From Octopus sinensis (Eukaryota), in contig NC_043001.1 in assembly GCF_006345805.1 (NCBI RefSeq), positions 60,016,001 to 60,080,000 of the forward strand: a stretch of DNA of 64,000 bases, written 5' to 3'. The translations under genes were made by a program, and so were the position numbers. This document shows positions 13,915-21,430 of the stretch, piece by piece (the stretch's first letter is position 1; the number at the start of each line of letters is the position of its first letter). The notes beneath the pieces are model-generated. The model saw nothing but the letters and a program-made list of their open reading frames with translations. It did not search any database and was not told where the DNA came from.

Positions 13915-14075
13915 TTCTATATTTAAGAGATGAGGAATTATGTACATTATTTACATTTGATGAATATTTGTCCTCACCTTGTTTGTTGTTAACACAACGT
14001 TTCGGCTGACATACCACCCAAGGCTTCATCAGATGTCTTGGGCAAATTACGAACCAAGGTTCCCATTCCTAAGGT
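13915..14075 (-). mobile_element. 3' tail of the tRNA-head/(AAT)n/HHR composite SINE, with HHR at 13991-14037
   Basis: Reverse complement matches 44085-44253; reads GACAT-CTGATGA...CAGCC-GAAACGTT-GTGTT. Confidence 0.85.
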
Positions 14076-14269
14076 GTGTTGTTGTTGTTGTTGTTGTTGT
14101 TGTTGTTCTTCTTCTTCTTCTTCTTCTTCTTCTTCTTCTTCTTCTTCTTCTTCTTCTTCTTCTTCTTCTTATTATTATTATTATTATTATTATTATTATT
14201 ATTATTATTATTATTATTATTATTATTATTATTATTATTATTATTAATATTATTATTATTATTATTATT
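14076..14269. repeat. (GTT)(CTT)(ATT) compound microsatellite
   Basis: Read directly from the sequence. Confidence 0.95.
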
Positions 14270-17200
14270 CAGTAGTTTTATTTTTATAACGTGCTTTCAC
14301 TTCACAACCGAGCGCAGCTCTGTGTGCCTTGATGGTTACTGTGATGCTCTGATGGTTACTGTATTGAAAGTGTTCTGCGTAGGATGTGAGCAGTGCCCAG
14401 TAGTGCAATTTTCTGTATGTTACATGTATTTGTAAGCCCTGGTATTTTTGTTATGTATTTGTCTGAAAATTTTTATCATGCCTAATGCGCCTACTATGAT
14501 AGGAATTGTTTCTGTTTTTAGATTCCACATTCGGGTTACCTCTATTTCCAGGTCTTTGTATTTTGAAAGTTTCTCCATTTCTTTTAGAAACACGTTGTCA
14601 TCTGCTGGTATTGATACATCAATTAGAAAGTTTTTTTTTTCTTCATGATCTCTGACAATTATATCTGGTCTGTTGACCTTAATTTCTCTATCTGTGTGTA
14701 TCGGCATATCCCAGGGTATGGTTGCTTTCTCGTTTTCTGTGACCTTTTCTGGTGTGTGACTATACCATCTTTTTTCTGTTGTTATTCCATAATGTTGGTA
14801 TAGCTTCCAGTGTATGTAGGTCCCAACTCTGTCGTGTCTGTGAATATATTCCTTCTTAGCTAGGACTGGGCAGCCAGAGATAATACGATTTATTGTTTCT
14901 TGTCCATCTCCACATATTCTGCAGTTACTTGATATATTTCTTTTCATTACATGTTTTTGTAATTCCTGGGGTGGGGAGGCTTTGGTCTTGTGCTGCAATT
15001 AAAAATCCTTCTGTCTCTGCTTTCAGTCCTGAGCTTCTCAACCACAGCTGGGATTTTTCTTTGTCTATTTCTTTTGCATTTAGTTTAGTCCAGTACTTGC
15101 CATGAAGGGGCTTTTCTTGCCATCGTTTTATCATGGTCCGTTGCTGTTCTAGTTTTAGTTTGGATTTCATTTGCTTTATAATTTTGTTGTGTCTTCTTCT
15201 TTTTCTTCTTCTTCTTCTTCTTCTTCTTCTTCTTCTTCTTCCTTCCTTCTTCTTCTTCTTCTTCTTCTTCTTCTTTCTTCTTCTTCTTTTCTTCTTCTCT
15301 CTTCTTCTCCTTCTTCTTCTTCTTCTTTCCTTCTTCTTCTTCTTCTTCTTCTTCTTCTTATTCTTCTTCTTCTTCTTCTTCTTCTTGGTTCATATTTGGA
15401 GAGGTGGCTTAGATTTCTTGTTTGTATTTGTAAGCTTCCTTAAATACTGAGAATAATTTTTTGTTTTGTTAGTGTTTTGCCGCTATATGTATCAGTTTTT
15501 CTTGCTTCTGAAGTAGGTATTTTGCAGTCCTATGGTGGTTATTTTATAGTAGTGTTCCAGCTTTATAGGCCTCTAACACCTTCTATACGTTGTATATATA
15601 GTCTTTCTATGTCAGATTTTGGGTCATGCATCCTAGATCCTGTCATTATTTTTTCTTGTTTTCCTATCTATTTTGGTTAGTTCATTTAGCATCCAGTTAA
15701 GGATATTGTAGTTGTAACTTATAACAGGGACGGGTAAAGTGTTAATACCTATTATCTTGTTTTTAGCATTGAGCTCTGTTTTTAATATTGATTTAACTCG
15801 TCTATAGTATTTTTCTTTATTTTCTCTTTCATTTGTGTGTGTTGTGTCTTATCTAGTTCATGGATTGCTAAGTATTTGTAAGTTTGTCTTTGGTGTAATT
15901 CTCTTATTTCATTGGCTTTATCTAGTGTGATGTTGCTACTCTTAACTAGTTTTCCTCTTTTCAGGGTTACTTTGGCGCATTTTTCTAATCCAAATTTCAT
16001 ATCTATTTCTCTGGTGAATCCATGAACTGTCTTTAATAGTGTTTCCAGCTGTTTGTCATTTGCAGCGAATAGTTTTAGGTCATCCATATATAAAATATGG
16101 CTGATCGTTTTGCCGTAACATTTATATCGCATCCAGTTCTATTTAGCATATCAGATAGAGGTTACAGTTCCAACCAGAAAAGGAGTGGAGAGAGCGTGTC
16201 TCCCTGGAATATTCCTCTTCTAATGGGGATGCCTTTGGTTTTCATGAGTCCCTCTTTTGTTTGGAGGTGTAGGACTGTTTGCCATTTATTCATAGAGTGC
16301 TCTATGAATTTTATGATTGTTGGTGCTACTTTGTTAATGGCTAGTGTTTCGAGGATCCATGTGTGGGGGATGCTATCAAACGCCTTTCGGTTGTCGATCC
16401 AGGCCATACTGAGGCCTCTAATCATTCTGTGGCTATCTTCCGTTATGGCTTTATTGATCATTAGTTGATCTTTACAGCCATATGAGCCTCTGCGGCACCC
16501 CTTCTGCTCTTCTGGAAACAGGTTGTTTTCGTCCAGGTGCTTGTTCAATCTTTGTGATATTACTGCAGCGAATGCTTTGTACATTGTAGGGAAACAAGTT
16601 ATAGGTCTGTAGGTTTCTGGTTTTGCTGTCTCATTGGTTTTGGGTATTAAGAAGTTTTCCCCTTCGTGAGACATTCAGGCATTGTCTCTGGCTCTGCCAG
16701 TATGTTGTTAAGGTTTTCAGCCAGCCTTTTCTGCATTCCAGTCAGATATTTCAACCAGAAGTTGGGGATCTCGTCATGCCCAGGTGCTTTCCAGTTGCTT
16801 AGTCGTTGCAGTGCCTGGGTGACCTCTTCAGTTGTTATGGGGGTCCAAAGTTGCACAGATGCTAAGTTTGTTGTTTTAATACTTCTTTTTTTGGTTGTTC
16901 ATTCGCCGACCATATTTCCTTCCAGAATTCTTCCACTTCTTCTGCCGTTGGTGCTGCAGTGATTTCTATTTTATGTTTGCCAAGTTCTTGGTAAAACTTT
17001 TTGGGGTTGGAGTTGAACTGTTTGTTTTGTTCAAAGAAGCGTTGGCGTTTCTCATACCGGCGGATCCTTTGCGCTTTGGCAAGGATATCTTGCTTTAGCT
17101 TTTCTCTTATCTCAGGTAAAACTTTTTCTGTGATGTTGTATTTGCACAGTATTTTTGTTTTCTCTTTGTTGCTTAGTAGCGTTGATTGTCTACTGATTTC

Positions 17201-19917: not shown

Positions 19918-19920
19918 AAT

Positions 19921-21216
19921 TCGAAAACTGTTGACAATGCATTGAGTGCACCACCCTAAGGCAGATATAGATCGATTTTATCTACGAAGAAAGGAGGGAG
20001 GCCGTGTGCTTTTGCAACTGGCAATAACAATGAAGGTTGCTACAATTGGCCTAGACACCTACCTGAAAAACTCCGAGGACTGGATGTTAAAACTTGTCTC
20101 AAAACATGAAGACAAGAAAGCATCATACTCAGTAAAAAAACAGGCAAAGGAATATCTAAGTGAATTCCGATTACAACAAATTCCGGAATTAGACACACAA
20201 GAAATAAGCACAGAAAAAGCTAAGCGCATGAAAACCCGTGCTAAAACTGCTGCCTTAGATATTCTGAATGTTAACTGGCAAGAAAAACCTCTCAATGGCA
20301 AATACCCAAAGAGAGCAAATAATGCAGATGTTGACAAAGCCCCGACCCATCAAAGGCTAATGGCCTCTGGCTTAAAATCTGAAACAGAAGGGTTTATCAT
20401 AGCAGCTCAAGATCAATTCCTACCTACAAGGAACTACCAGACAAACATACTAAAGAACGGCAGTAGCCCAACATGTTGTGTATGTCAACAACAAAATGAA
20501 ACCATTGATCATGTTGTCTCCAAGTGCAATCTTCTTGCGCCTACAGAGTATCTCAACAGGCATGATAGAGCTGCACAATATATTCACTGGGTAATTTGCA
20601 GAAGCCTGGACTTGCCCCATGATAAAAACTGGTGGGAACGCAAACCACCTCCAATGCTTGAAAATGACCACATCTCACTCCTCTGGAACTTCACCATTCA
20701 AATTGACAGAAAGATAGACGCGAATAGGCCAGATATCATAGTAAAAGACATCAGACAAATGACATGCCTCCTCATTGACATGACTGTCCCAATCGATATA
20801 AACGTATCTGTCACGACCTGACATTAAGATATGGAAATAGAAATCAGCAAAATGTGGAACCTGAAGAGTAAAACAATACCTGTTTTCATAGGTGCCCTGG
20901 GATTGATAGCAAAGGGGCTGAATTCTACCTAACTCAGATACCAGGAAACCCCAAAATAGCAGACATCCAAAAGGTAGTCCTCATGGGAACTGCTCATATC
21001 CTACGCAAAATACTTTCTTTGTAATCTCAAGTTTTAAAACAAACATAATTTTCGTAGGGTTTTTTAGACATTCACTTGTACAACACTAAGTACAAAACCA
21101 AATATATGGCACCATAGGCATAACACCAACATGAACTTCCAACTTGTTGTCTCTTGAGGTCTCTGGGTGAGACTTGGAGCTAGCTTGTGCAAATGTGAAG
21201 CAAAAGTCAAACATAG
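19921..21216 (+). mobile_element. 5'-truncated Dong family beta (copy B2) with 291-aa ORF
   Basis: Colinear with about 5459-6765; knuckle and RLE present; ends CATAG|AATAAT. Confidence 0.92.
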
Positions 21217-21430
21217 AATAATAATGATAATAATATTAATAATAATAATAATAATAATAATAATAATAATAATAATAATAATAATAATAATAATAATAAT
21301 AATAATAATAATAATAATAATAATAATAACAACAACAACATACCATCGGAATGAGAACAGCGGAAACGTTCTGTCAACAACAAACAAGACGAGGGAAATA
21401 TCCATCAAATGTAAATAATGTAGATAAAAT
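21217..21430 (+). mobile_element. (AAT)n plus internally deleted 3' tail of the composite SINE
   Basis: GGAATGAGAAC..GAAACGTT..AACAACAAACAAGA..AAATATCC..AAATGTAAATAATGTA matches 44101-44230; the 5' half of the HHR is missing. Confidence 0.75.

Follow-up and report, generated by a model that had tools for sequence, protein, structure and literature searches.

Dong-like LINE sequence within the internal (AAT)n of two SINE copies in an Octopus sinensis window

We analyzed a window of 64,000 nucleotides from Octopus sinensis (contig NC_043001.1, positions 60,016,001 to 60,080,000 of the forward strand) and found in it three copies of a short interspersed element (SINE) composed of a tRNA-like head, an internal (AAT)n microsatellite and a unique tail. 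One copy is unsplit. In the two others, which lie head to head at 13915-21430 of the window, the head and the tail are separated by sequence of Dong-like long interspersed elements (LINEs). We consider it probable that two old copies of a tRNA-Arg-like SINE were each split by Dong-like insertion into the internal (AAT)n, as a passive outcome of known properties of the two elements. The SINE adds landing sites for these LINEs, and nothing in the window points to preference, co-adaptation or RNA polymerase III (Pol III)-driven LINE expression.

One unsplit and two split SINE copies

We took the unsplit copy as the reference. Its parts are as follows.

43881-44253, plus strand: unsplit reference SINE, 373 nt, consisting of head, microsatellite and tail
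43881-43955, plus strand: reference head, 75 nt, tRNA-Arg-like
43956-44069, plus strand: reference microsatellite, (AAT)33(AAC)n
44070-44253, plus strand: reference tail, unique, ~185 nt, ending ...TCTTAAATATAG

Tandem Repeats Finder (TRF) reported unbroken (AAT)33 at 43956-44056, after which come (AAC)5 and a few AGC units. The head carries a box A, TGGCATAGTGG (43888-43898), that agrees with the consensus TRGCNNAGTGG at 11 of 11 positions, and a box B, AGTTCGATTCC (43932-43942), that agrees at 10 of 11. The two boxes start 44 nt apart, which is the spacing of tRNA positions 8 and 52, and TCT (Arg) stands at the anticodon position (34-36; 43914-43916). When the window was shuffled 200 times, this combination of box A, box B and spacing was matched in none of the shuffles. 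There is no T4 run within the element; the first one follows at 44343, ~90 nt beyond its end. The SINE is short and non-coding, and its three window copies have unrelated flanks. At its 3′ end the reference copy adjoins the terminus of a Tc1/mariner-like relic (44254-44675), of which a second copy, 86% identical, is found at 56380-56833.

To locate further copies, we compared the reference head and tail with the whole window by BLAST. The minus strand holds a head match of 40 nt (19823-19862; 90%, E=8e-9) and a tail match of 197 nt (13916-14110; 82%, E=2e-46), and the plus strand holds a head match of 63 nt (19855-19917; 86%, E=2e-14) and a tail match of 71 nt (21358-21427; 84.5%, E=1e-14). 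No further heads or tails, solitary ones included, were detected in the window. Dong-like sequence was mapped by tblastn with a 1211-aa full-length Dong relative from L003, a long metagenome contig of another species. The resulting features of the locus are listed below; amino acid (aa) positions are those of the probe.

13915-14075, minus strand: full SINE tail, ending ...TCTTAAATATAG, 82% to the reference by alignment
14076-14269, minus strand: downstream microsatellite remnant of the minus copy, (AAT)n(AAG)n(AAC)n between the 3′ end of D and the tail (TRF 14077-14269)
14270-18492, minus strand: Dong-like D (tblastn 18039-14365), aa 57-1207, near full length at ~4.2 kb, its 3′ end ...AAACTACTG directly on (AAT)n
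18493-18536, minus strand: (AAT)n between E and D, 44 nt, both the repeat on which E ends and what is left of the D target on its upstream side (TRF)
18537-19649, minus strand: Dong-like E (tblastn 19649-18711), aa 896-1207 only, 5′-truncated
19650-19822, minus strand: upstream microsatellite remnant of the minus copy, (AAT)n(AAC)n(AAT)n between the head and E (TRF)
19823-19862, minus strand: SINE head fragment, head positions 37-76 (the 3′ 40 nt), with box B and without box A
19855-19917, plus strand: SINE head, box A with 2 mismatches, box B 10/11
19918-21216, plus strand: Dong-like B2 (tblastn 19904-21018), aa 832-1207 only, 5′-truncated
21217-21340, plus strand: repeat between the 3′ end of B2 and the tail, (AAT)n(AAC)n (TRF 21217-21329)
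21341-21430, plus strand: SINE tail with a ~50-nt internal deletion and a 3′ end divergent from the consensus, by alignment

Read along its own strand, the minus copy runs from the head through (AAT/AAC)n (19822-19650), E, (AAT)n (18536-18493), D and (AAT)(AAG)(AAC)n (14269-14076) to the tail. The plus copy runs from the head through B2 and (AAT)n(AAC)n (21217-21340) to the tail; no (AAT)n is left between its head and B2, and the head is also shortened by its last 6 nt. The two heads overlap by 8 nt at 19855-19862 (TTGGGTTA). Alignment of the copies showed that the junction of head and repeat, CAGTGNCCTG running into AATAAT, is identical in two of them, and that the junction of repeat and tail, (AAC)n running into TTAGGAATGAGAAC, is common to all three. 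The reference and the minus copy share the SINE 3′ end, beyond which their flanks diverge. Overall, the copies are 81-87% alike, that is, 13-19% different. We also considered insertion of the plus SINE into the head of the minus SINE and rejected it, as the missing 36 nt of the minus head are not found downstream of the plus tail.

An earlier note on this DNA, made from the letters alone, had described an intact head-(AAT)n-tail element, the same parts split at 13915-21430, and two of three copies occupied by three insertions. The sequence and boxes at 43881-44253, the BLAST placements and alignments of heads and tails, and the Dong-like coding sequence that tblastn puts between them agree with all of this. 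The two layouts it drew hold, with corrections of detail. For the minus copy the split order was right, but the head is only the 3′ 40 nt, and a 44-nt repeat separates E from D. For the plus copy the order head-B2-(AAT)n-tail was right, but the head overlaps that of the minus copy, and the tail starts at ~21341 and has lost ~50 nt.

The head, the (AAT)n and the tail belong together as a single SINE, of a family also present in Octopus bimaculoides, because head and tail are co-oriented in each of the three window copies and the same parts recur in antisense in that species. A six-frame search with SINE peptides matched the O. bimaculoides NUP42 gene model (A0A0L8FR24). Its C terminus, ...VLGKFRTWVLIPKVFFDA-IIIIIIIII-QVTAWNRTRNLGV, is the antisense translation of the start of the tail, (ATT)9 and the head. 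This copy is independent and unsplit and has only ~9 repeat units. When the open reading frame (ORF) of the tail was compared with 1.8 billion representatives by HMMER, 24 matches were obtained; the best is the O. bimaculoides protein A0A0L8FV75, 78% identical, and weaker ones come from Logan contigs. From these sequences we conclude that the microsatellite is internal and expandable and that the tail includes a module conserved beyond the source species; by themselves, they would also make an octopus the probable source of the window.

Other searches with the SINE were negative. We found no match to its sequence in the literature searched, an antisense SINE peptide search returned no match, and exact-sequence look-ups of the window ORFs and of the O. 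bimaculoides match found none either. A scan of metagenome contigs for the head motifs returned only one unrelated tRNA-like locus (L004). No copies of this SINE occur at L002 or L003, loci of another species where Dong relatives sit on (ATA)n. Derivation of the SINE tail from a Dong 3′ end, as in a Dong-dependent SINE, was rejected, since the tail has no similarity to Dong by BLAST. Seven relatives of the tail module (P0126, P0130, P0132, P0134, P0137, P0140 and P0143) consist of tandem repeats of ~43 aa (~130 nt), which suggests that a conserved SINE domain turned satellite in the contigs from which they were translated.

Dong-like LINEs and their use of (AAT)n

The tblastn search detected six Dong-like copies, all in the first 21.4 kb of the window. 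Besides B2, D and E, these are the following, given with the locus that two of them share.

6-2045 by tblastn, 6-2240 with its 3′ (AAT)n, plus strand: Dong-like A, aa 484-1207, of the D family, cut by the window edge, no SINE parts nearby
2673-6765 (tblastn 3035-6563), plus strand: Dong-like B1, aa 33-1207, full length
7252-7514 (tblastn 7257-7404), plus strand: Dong-like C, aa 1159-1207, short 3′ fragment
2673-7586, plus strand: non-SINE locus of B1, complex repeat (6766-7251), C and (AAT)n (7515-7586), with no head or tail match

All six copies end straight on (AAT)n, read on their own sense strand. Specificity for (TAA)n is the published hallmark of Dong (PMC3812793). For Octopus vulgaris, 5 Dong-R4 families have been annotated; they are abundant and, with 1129 young insertions, show recent activity (PMC13282606). 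Pfam searches gave RVT_1 and zf-RVT matches in D. A CX2CX8HX4C motif followed by KPDI(V/I)V...LIDM...KYK is conserved in E, D and B; it corresponds to the CCHC and PD..D..K signature of the restriction-like endonuclease in R2-type LINEs. Aligned with the endonuclease region of an R2 structure, the motif gave a weak match below significance (E=0.24). The best solved-structure matches of the 1211-aa relative are R2 proteins (E=2e-37). An apurinic/apyrimidinic endonuclease (APE) domain is absent from this relative, in which Pfam finds RVT_1 and zf-RVT only, and from the N-terminal ORFs of D. Architecture and target are thus the grounds on which we call these LINEs Dong-like or R4-like.

The C-terminal domains of E, D and B share 43-48% amino acid identity, which bears out the three families named in the earlier note. 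D is degenerate, with many stops and frameshifts, and in self-BLAST it is 80% identical to A and 87% identical to C. E keeps an intact 314-aa C-terminal ORF with the CCHC motif and the KPD...D restriction-like endonuclease, and it is 96% identical to a longer copy on L001, an Italian sewage metagenome contig. That copy also ends on the repeat; the relatives in L002 and L003 end on (ATA)n. B2 is 86% identical to B1 at 5455-6765 (self-BLAST), and its 5′ junction, from ...CCAGGCAGT into AATTCGAAAACTG, shows CAG microhomology with the end of the head. The possibility that B1 and B2 represent a non-autonomous derivative with a defined 5′ end was rejected, as B1 runs on upstream as a full-length copy.

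Several side observations concern these LINEs and their surroundings. An (AAG)n expansion lies inside D at 15192-15386, between the reverse transcriptase and the endonuclease, and (AAG)n blocks also flank the 3′ end of B1 (6766-6792) and the minus SINE tail (14106-14170). At L001 1-126, the E-family copy is joined to an inverted D-like 3′ end, and L003 1-20858 holds about six Dong relatives in one orientation within 21 kb. A unique 556-bp segment at 7587-8142 is bracketed by (AAT)n (7515-7586 and 8143-8203) and resembles neither the SINE nor Dong; two arrays may have flanked this DNA from the start, or it may be a further insert that targets repeats.

We then tallied Dong occupancy over the (AAT)n loci of the window that were not themselves made by a Dong 3′ end (n=6).

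13915-19862: SINE-borne (AAT)n of the minus copy, occupied by E and D
19855-21430: SINE-borne (AAT)n of the plus copy, occupied by B2
43881-44253: SINE-borne (AAT)n of the reference copy, empty
Site of A: non-SINE (AAT)n, occupied
Site of B1 and C: non-SINE (AAT)n, occupied
8143-8203: non-SINE (AAT)n, empty

In this tiny sample, occupancy is equal, 2/3 for SINE-borne and 2/3 for non-SINE arrays, and there is no sign that Dong prefers the SINE-borne ones. These counts are compatible with equal occupancy, which the earlier note had named as refuting its reading. SINE-borne arrays account for two of the four occupied loci and for three of the six Dong-like copies; the other three have no SINE part nearby. 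For comparison, a share of >20% of copies inside the host has been used as the mark of a LINE specific to a host transposon (PMC4494074). Specificity for the SINE itself is not implied, because (AAT)n also exists outside it; the Dong target here is generic (AAT)n, used both inside and outside the SINE. The earlier note had also proposed that the SINE spreads target sites for Dong. This stands, since the SINE disperses usable (TAA)n sites in a microsatellite that holds three Dong-like LINEs.

Origin of the arrangement

In the account that we favor, the two SINE copies would have inserted first, head to head. Dong/R4-like LINEs with specificity for (TAA)n would then have entered the internal (AAT)n of each copy by target-primed reverse transcription (TPRT). 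In the minus copy, D would have come first and the younger E would have followed into the repeat remnant upstream of D, giving the tandem E-(AAT)n-D. In the plus copy, a 5′-truncated B2 would have inserted and become fused at its 5′ end to the terminus of the head, the upstream repeat being lost in the process. We infer the order SINEs, then D and B2, then E because the SINE copies are 13-19% diverged from one another, D and B2 13-20% from their relatives, and E 4% from the L001 copy. The nesting would be passive, requiring no more than a SINE whose (AAT)n can expand and a LINE for which any (TAA)n will do.

Several points weigh against this account. ARAGORN called no tRNA in the SINE heads, and the Rfam tRNA model did not match them even at E<=5; the stems of the heads are degenerate, and a recognizable tRNA fold or sequence is not preserved. 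Since both programs are blind to the heads, we base the tRNA origin on the two boxes, the distance between them and the triplet at the anticodon position, and the SINE would be tRNA-derived by promoter geometry rather than by a preserved cloverleaf. The 5′ boundary of the SINE and its target-site duplication are uncertain: a candidate duplication with an indel, AGAAAAATAT..TAGAT, surrounds the reference copy at 43850-43865 and 44254-44272 and, if real, would add ~20 nt to the SINE 5′ end. Self-BLAST found no partner LINE sharing the SINE tail among the LINEs of the window. We infer that the head-to-head junction arose when a 5′-truncated SINE was joined through the 8-nt microhomology beside an older SINE. 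Placement of the LINEs in the R4 clade with Dong is tentative. Finally, the sample is one 64-kb window with three SINE copies and four Dong-occupied loci.

Head and tail might instead be two separate elements, the head with (AAT)n being a short Dong-mobilized SINE in (TAA)n and the tail an unrelated repeat, so that nothing was split. The head does run straight into (AAT)n, as a Dong-dependent SINE would, but it has no similarity to any Dong 3′ untranslated region. The tail module is widespread alone, with 24 translated matches, some of them tandem and without heads, and its 3′ end carries neither (TAA)n nor poly(A). However, heads and tails pair in 3/3 cases, in the right order and orientation, and what separates them is nothing but repeat or Dong sequence; neither heads nor tails are found alone within the 64 kb, and the O. 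bimaculoides copy has tail, (ATT)9 and head with the same junctions. We regard two separate elements as very unlikely.

The arrangement could also have arisen without insertion into the SINE, if (AAT)n arrays (one flanking Dong, one in a SINE) had undergone ectopic recombination or gene conversion, or if one SINE-Dong locus had been duplicated in inverted form. Long (AAT)n arrays do recombine readily, the two occupied SINE copies are neighbors in inverted orientation, and no Dong copy lies beyond the first 21 kb or so of the window. Yet the two arms hold different Dong families, their heads end at unequal points (position 37 versus about 8), their tails differ by the 50-nt deletion and, at 87% alike, are no closer to each other than to the third copy, and the junctions resemble ordinary TPRT products in being 5′-truncated, in showing microhomology and in having the repeat at the 3′ end. 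We give such an origin almost no credence.

The earlier note had further suggested that the Pol III head could drive transcription of the inserted LINE. SINE and Dong would then be coupled, with the upstream head transcribing the LINE and serving a promoter-less site-specific element as a mobile promoter. Transcription driven by the target is known for site-specific LINEs such as R2 (discussed in PMC4494074), and the unsplit SINE is free of T4 runs, which means that Pol III would read through its microsatellite. The head is also upstream of and co-oriented with the LINE in 3/3 cases, but this co-orientation is forced, because the Dong target is strand-specific, as all six copies show, and the sense strand of the SINE carries AAT, not ATT. 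The local evidence, which bears on the loci of this window only, gives the idea no support. Box A is missing from the minus head; in the plus head it is degraded, with 2 mismatches, and behind this head the first TTTT comes 59 nt into B2 (19976). The LINEs next to the heads, E and B2, are dead fragments that tblastn shows to be without reverse transcriptase. On the sense strand, T4+ runs number 7 in full-length D (the first at nt 1285) and 16 in full-length B1 (the first at nt 12), and half of the six Dong copies lie away from any SINE head. We consider such coupling hardly credible. We also considered that the 5′ ends of Dong might carry a ribozyme, HDV-like or of another kind, and rejected this, as Rfam gave no match there at E<=5.

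Neighboring features and comparison with known systems

Beyond the SINE and the Dong-like copies, the window holds several other elements. Some 285 nt downstream of the plus SINE tail, at 21714-21760 on the plus strand, there is a type I hammerhead ribozyme (Rfam RF00163), whose 41.9 bits exceed the gathering score. It adjoins a degraded reverse transcriptase element (RVT_1) on the minus strand at 22677-24784, and the two together may be a Penelope-like element or a retrozyme. A full-length metazoan 7SL/signal recognition particle (SRP) RNA is present at 37305-37561 on the minus strand (Rfam RF00017, 165.9 bits). The repeat family that abuts it has at least five more copies in the window, its coordinates being 36841-37282, 38771-39176, 62304-62749, 60600-60790, 51689-52008 and 63505-63677. 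A second tRNA-like Pol III head at 29809-29866 on the minus strand (TGGCCCAGTGG ... GTTTCGATTCC, spacing 44) adjoins (CA)n at 29876-29935; it is 64% similar to the head studied here and, judged by sequence, probably belongs to a different SINE family. Two mariner-like transposon copies with Transposase_1 and HTH_48 domains (29972-31276 and 50149-51453) are 93.7% identical, and a Tc1-like ORF is located at 35894-36502.

The LINEs resemble other Dong/R4 elements (Bombyx mori Dong, DongAg, DongBg and the cephalopod "Dong-R4") in their single reverse transcriptase ORF, C-terminal CCHC and PD..D endonuclease and lack of APE. They also share insertion into (TAA)n, a 3′ end on the repeat and tandem arrays spaced by the repeat (PMC3812793; PMC13282606). 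They differ in that three diverged families use one target in one genome region and that half of the copies lie in a microsatellite owned by a SINE.

Site-specific LINEs that insert into other transposons have been described: Tx1L in Tx1D, Tx1-Mar in Mariner-N4_AMi and Tx1-9_AMi in Harbinger (PMC4494074, PMC6719617). The Tx1L/Tx1D type of Xenopus is the closest precedent, since there, too, landing sites are carried and multiplied by a non-autonomous element and composite nesting results. The Tx1 cases involve an APE-type endonuclease and a sequence peculiar to a DNA transposon, whereas here a LINE with a restriction-like endonuclease, a SINE host and a generic microsatellite are involved. Microsatellite-bearing retroposons such as the Haliotis MESC SINE with (CA)n, Alu and L1 are similar in that the element itself contains the repeat, which grows longer once the element has inserted (PMC4758252; PMC3812793); in our SINE, the repeat has 9 units in the O. 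bimaculoides copy versus at least 33 in the window. Unlike ours, their repeats are not reported in the literature searched as targets of repeat-specific LINEs. R2, co-transcribed with 28S rRNA, is alike in concept, being a site-specific LINE that lacks a promoter and owes its expression to the target (PMC4494074). It relies, however, on Pol I read-through and a self-cleaving ribozyme, whereas the 5′ ends of Dong yielded no ribozyme, and internal T runs would stop Pol III.

The earlier note knew of no description of this arrangement. We likewise found none of a SINE-borne (AAT)n serving as a Dong site in the literature searched, but the principle of a LINE targeting another transposon is published (PMC4494074, PMC6719617). 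The components are all known, namely, microsatellite-specific LINEs (PMC3812793), SINEs with expandable microsatellites (PMC4758252) and transposon-borne LINE targets; within the literature searched, the combination of SINE-borne (AAT)n and Dong is new. Coming from one window, the finding illustrates insertion rules that are already known, and does so cleanly, but it does not amount to a new mechanism.

Two extensions are worth stating. A 5′-truncated Dong 3′ end behind a Pol III head, as with B2, yields head, LINE 3′ end and (TAA)n, a possible origin of Dong-dependent SINEs. It is also conceivable, at the level of a tentative and rather doubtful suggestion, that this abundant SINE family is a main octopus source of long (AAT)n and so of Dong-R4 sites, its amplification having built the niche in which Dong-R4 rose to be among the most active LINE groups of octopuses.

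On the practical side, repeat annotation would list loci of this kind as separate head and tail fragments and inflate the counts of SINE fragments, and (AAT)n microsatellite markers in these species would often fall inside repeats. Should the pattern extend to the whole genome, a non-autonomous element would, by dispersing target sites in the microsatellite that it carries, influence where an unrelated autonomous element can insert, which could help explain the joint prominence of Dong-R4 LINEs and SINEs in octopus genomes (PMC13282606).

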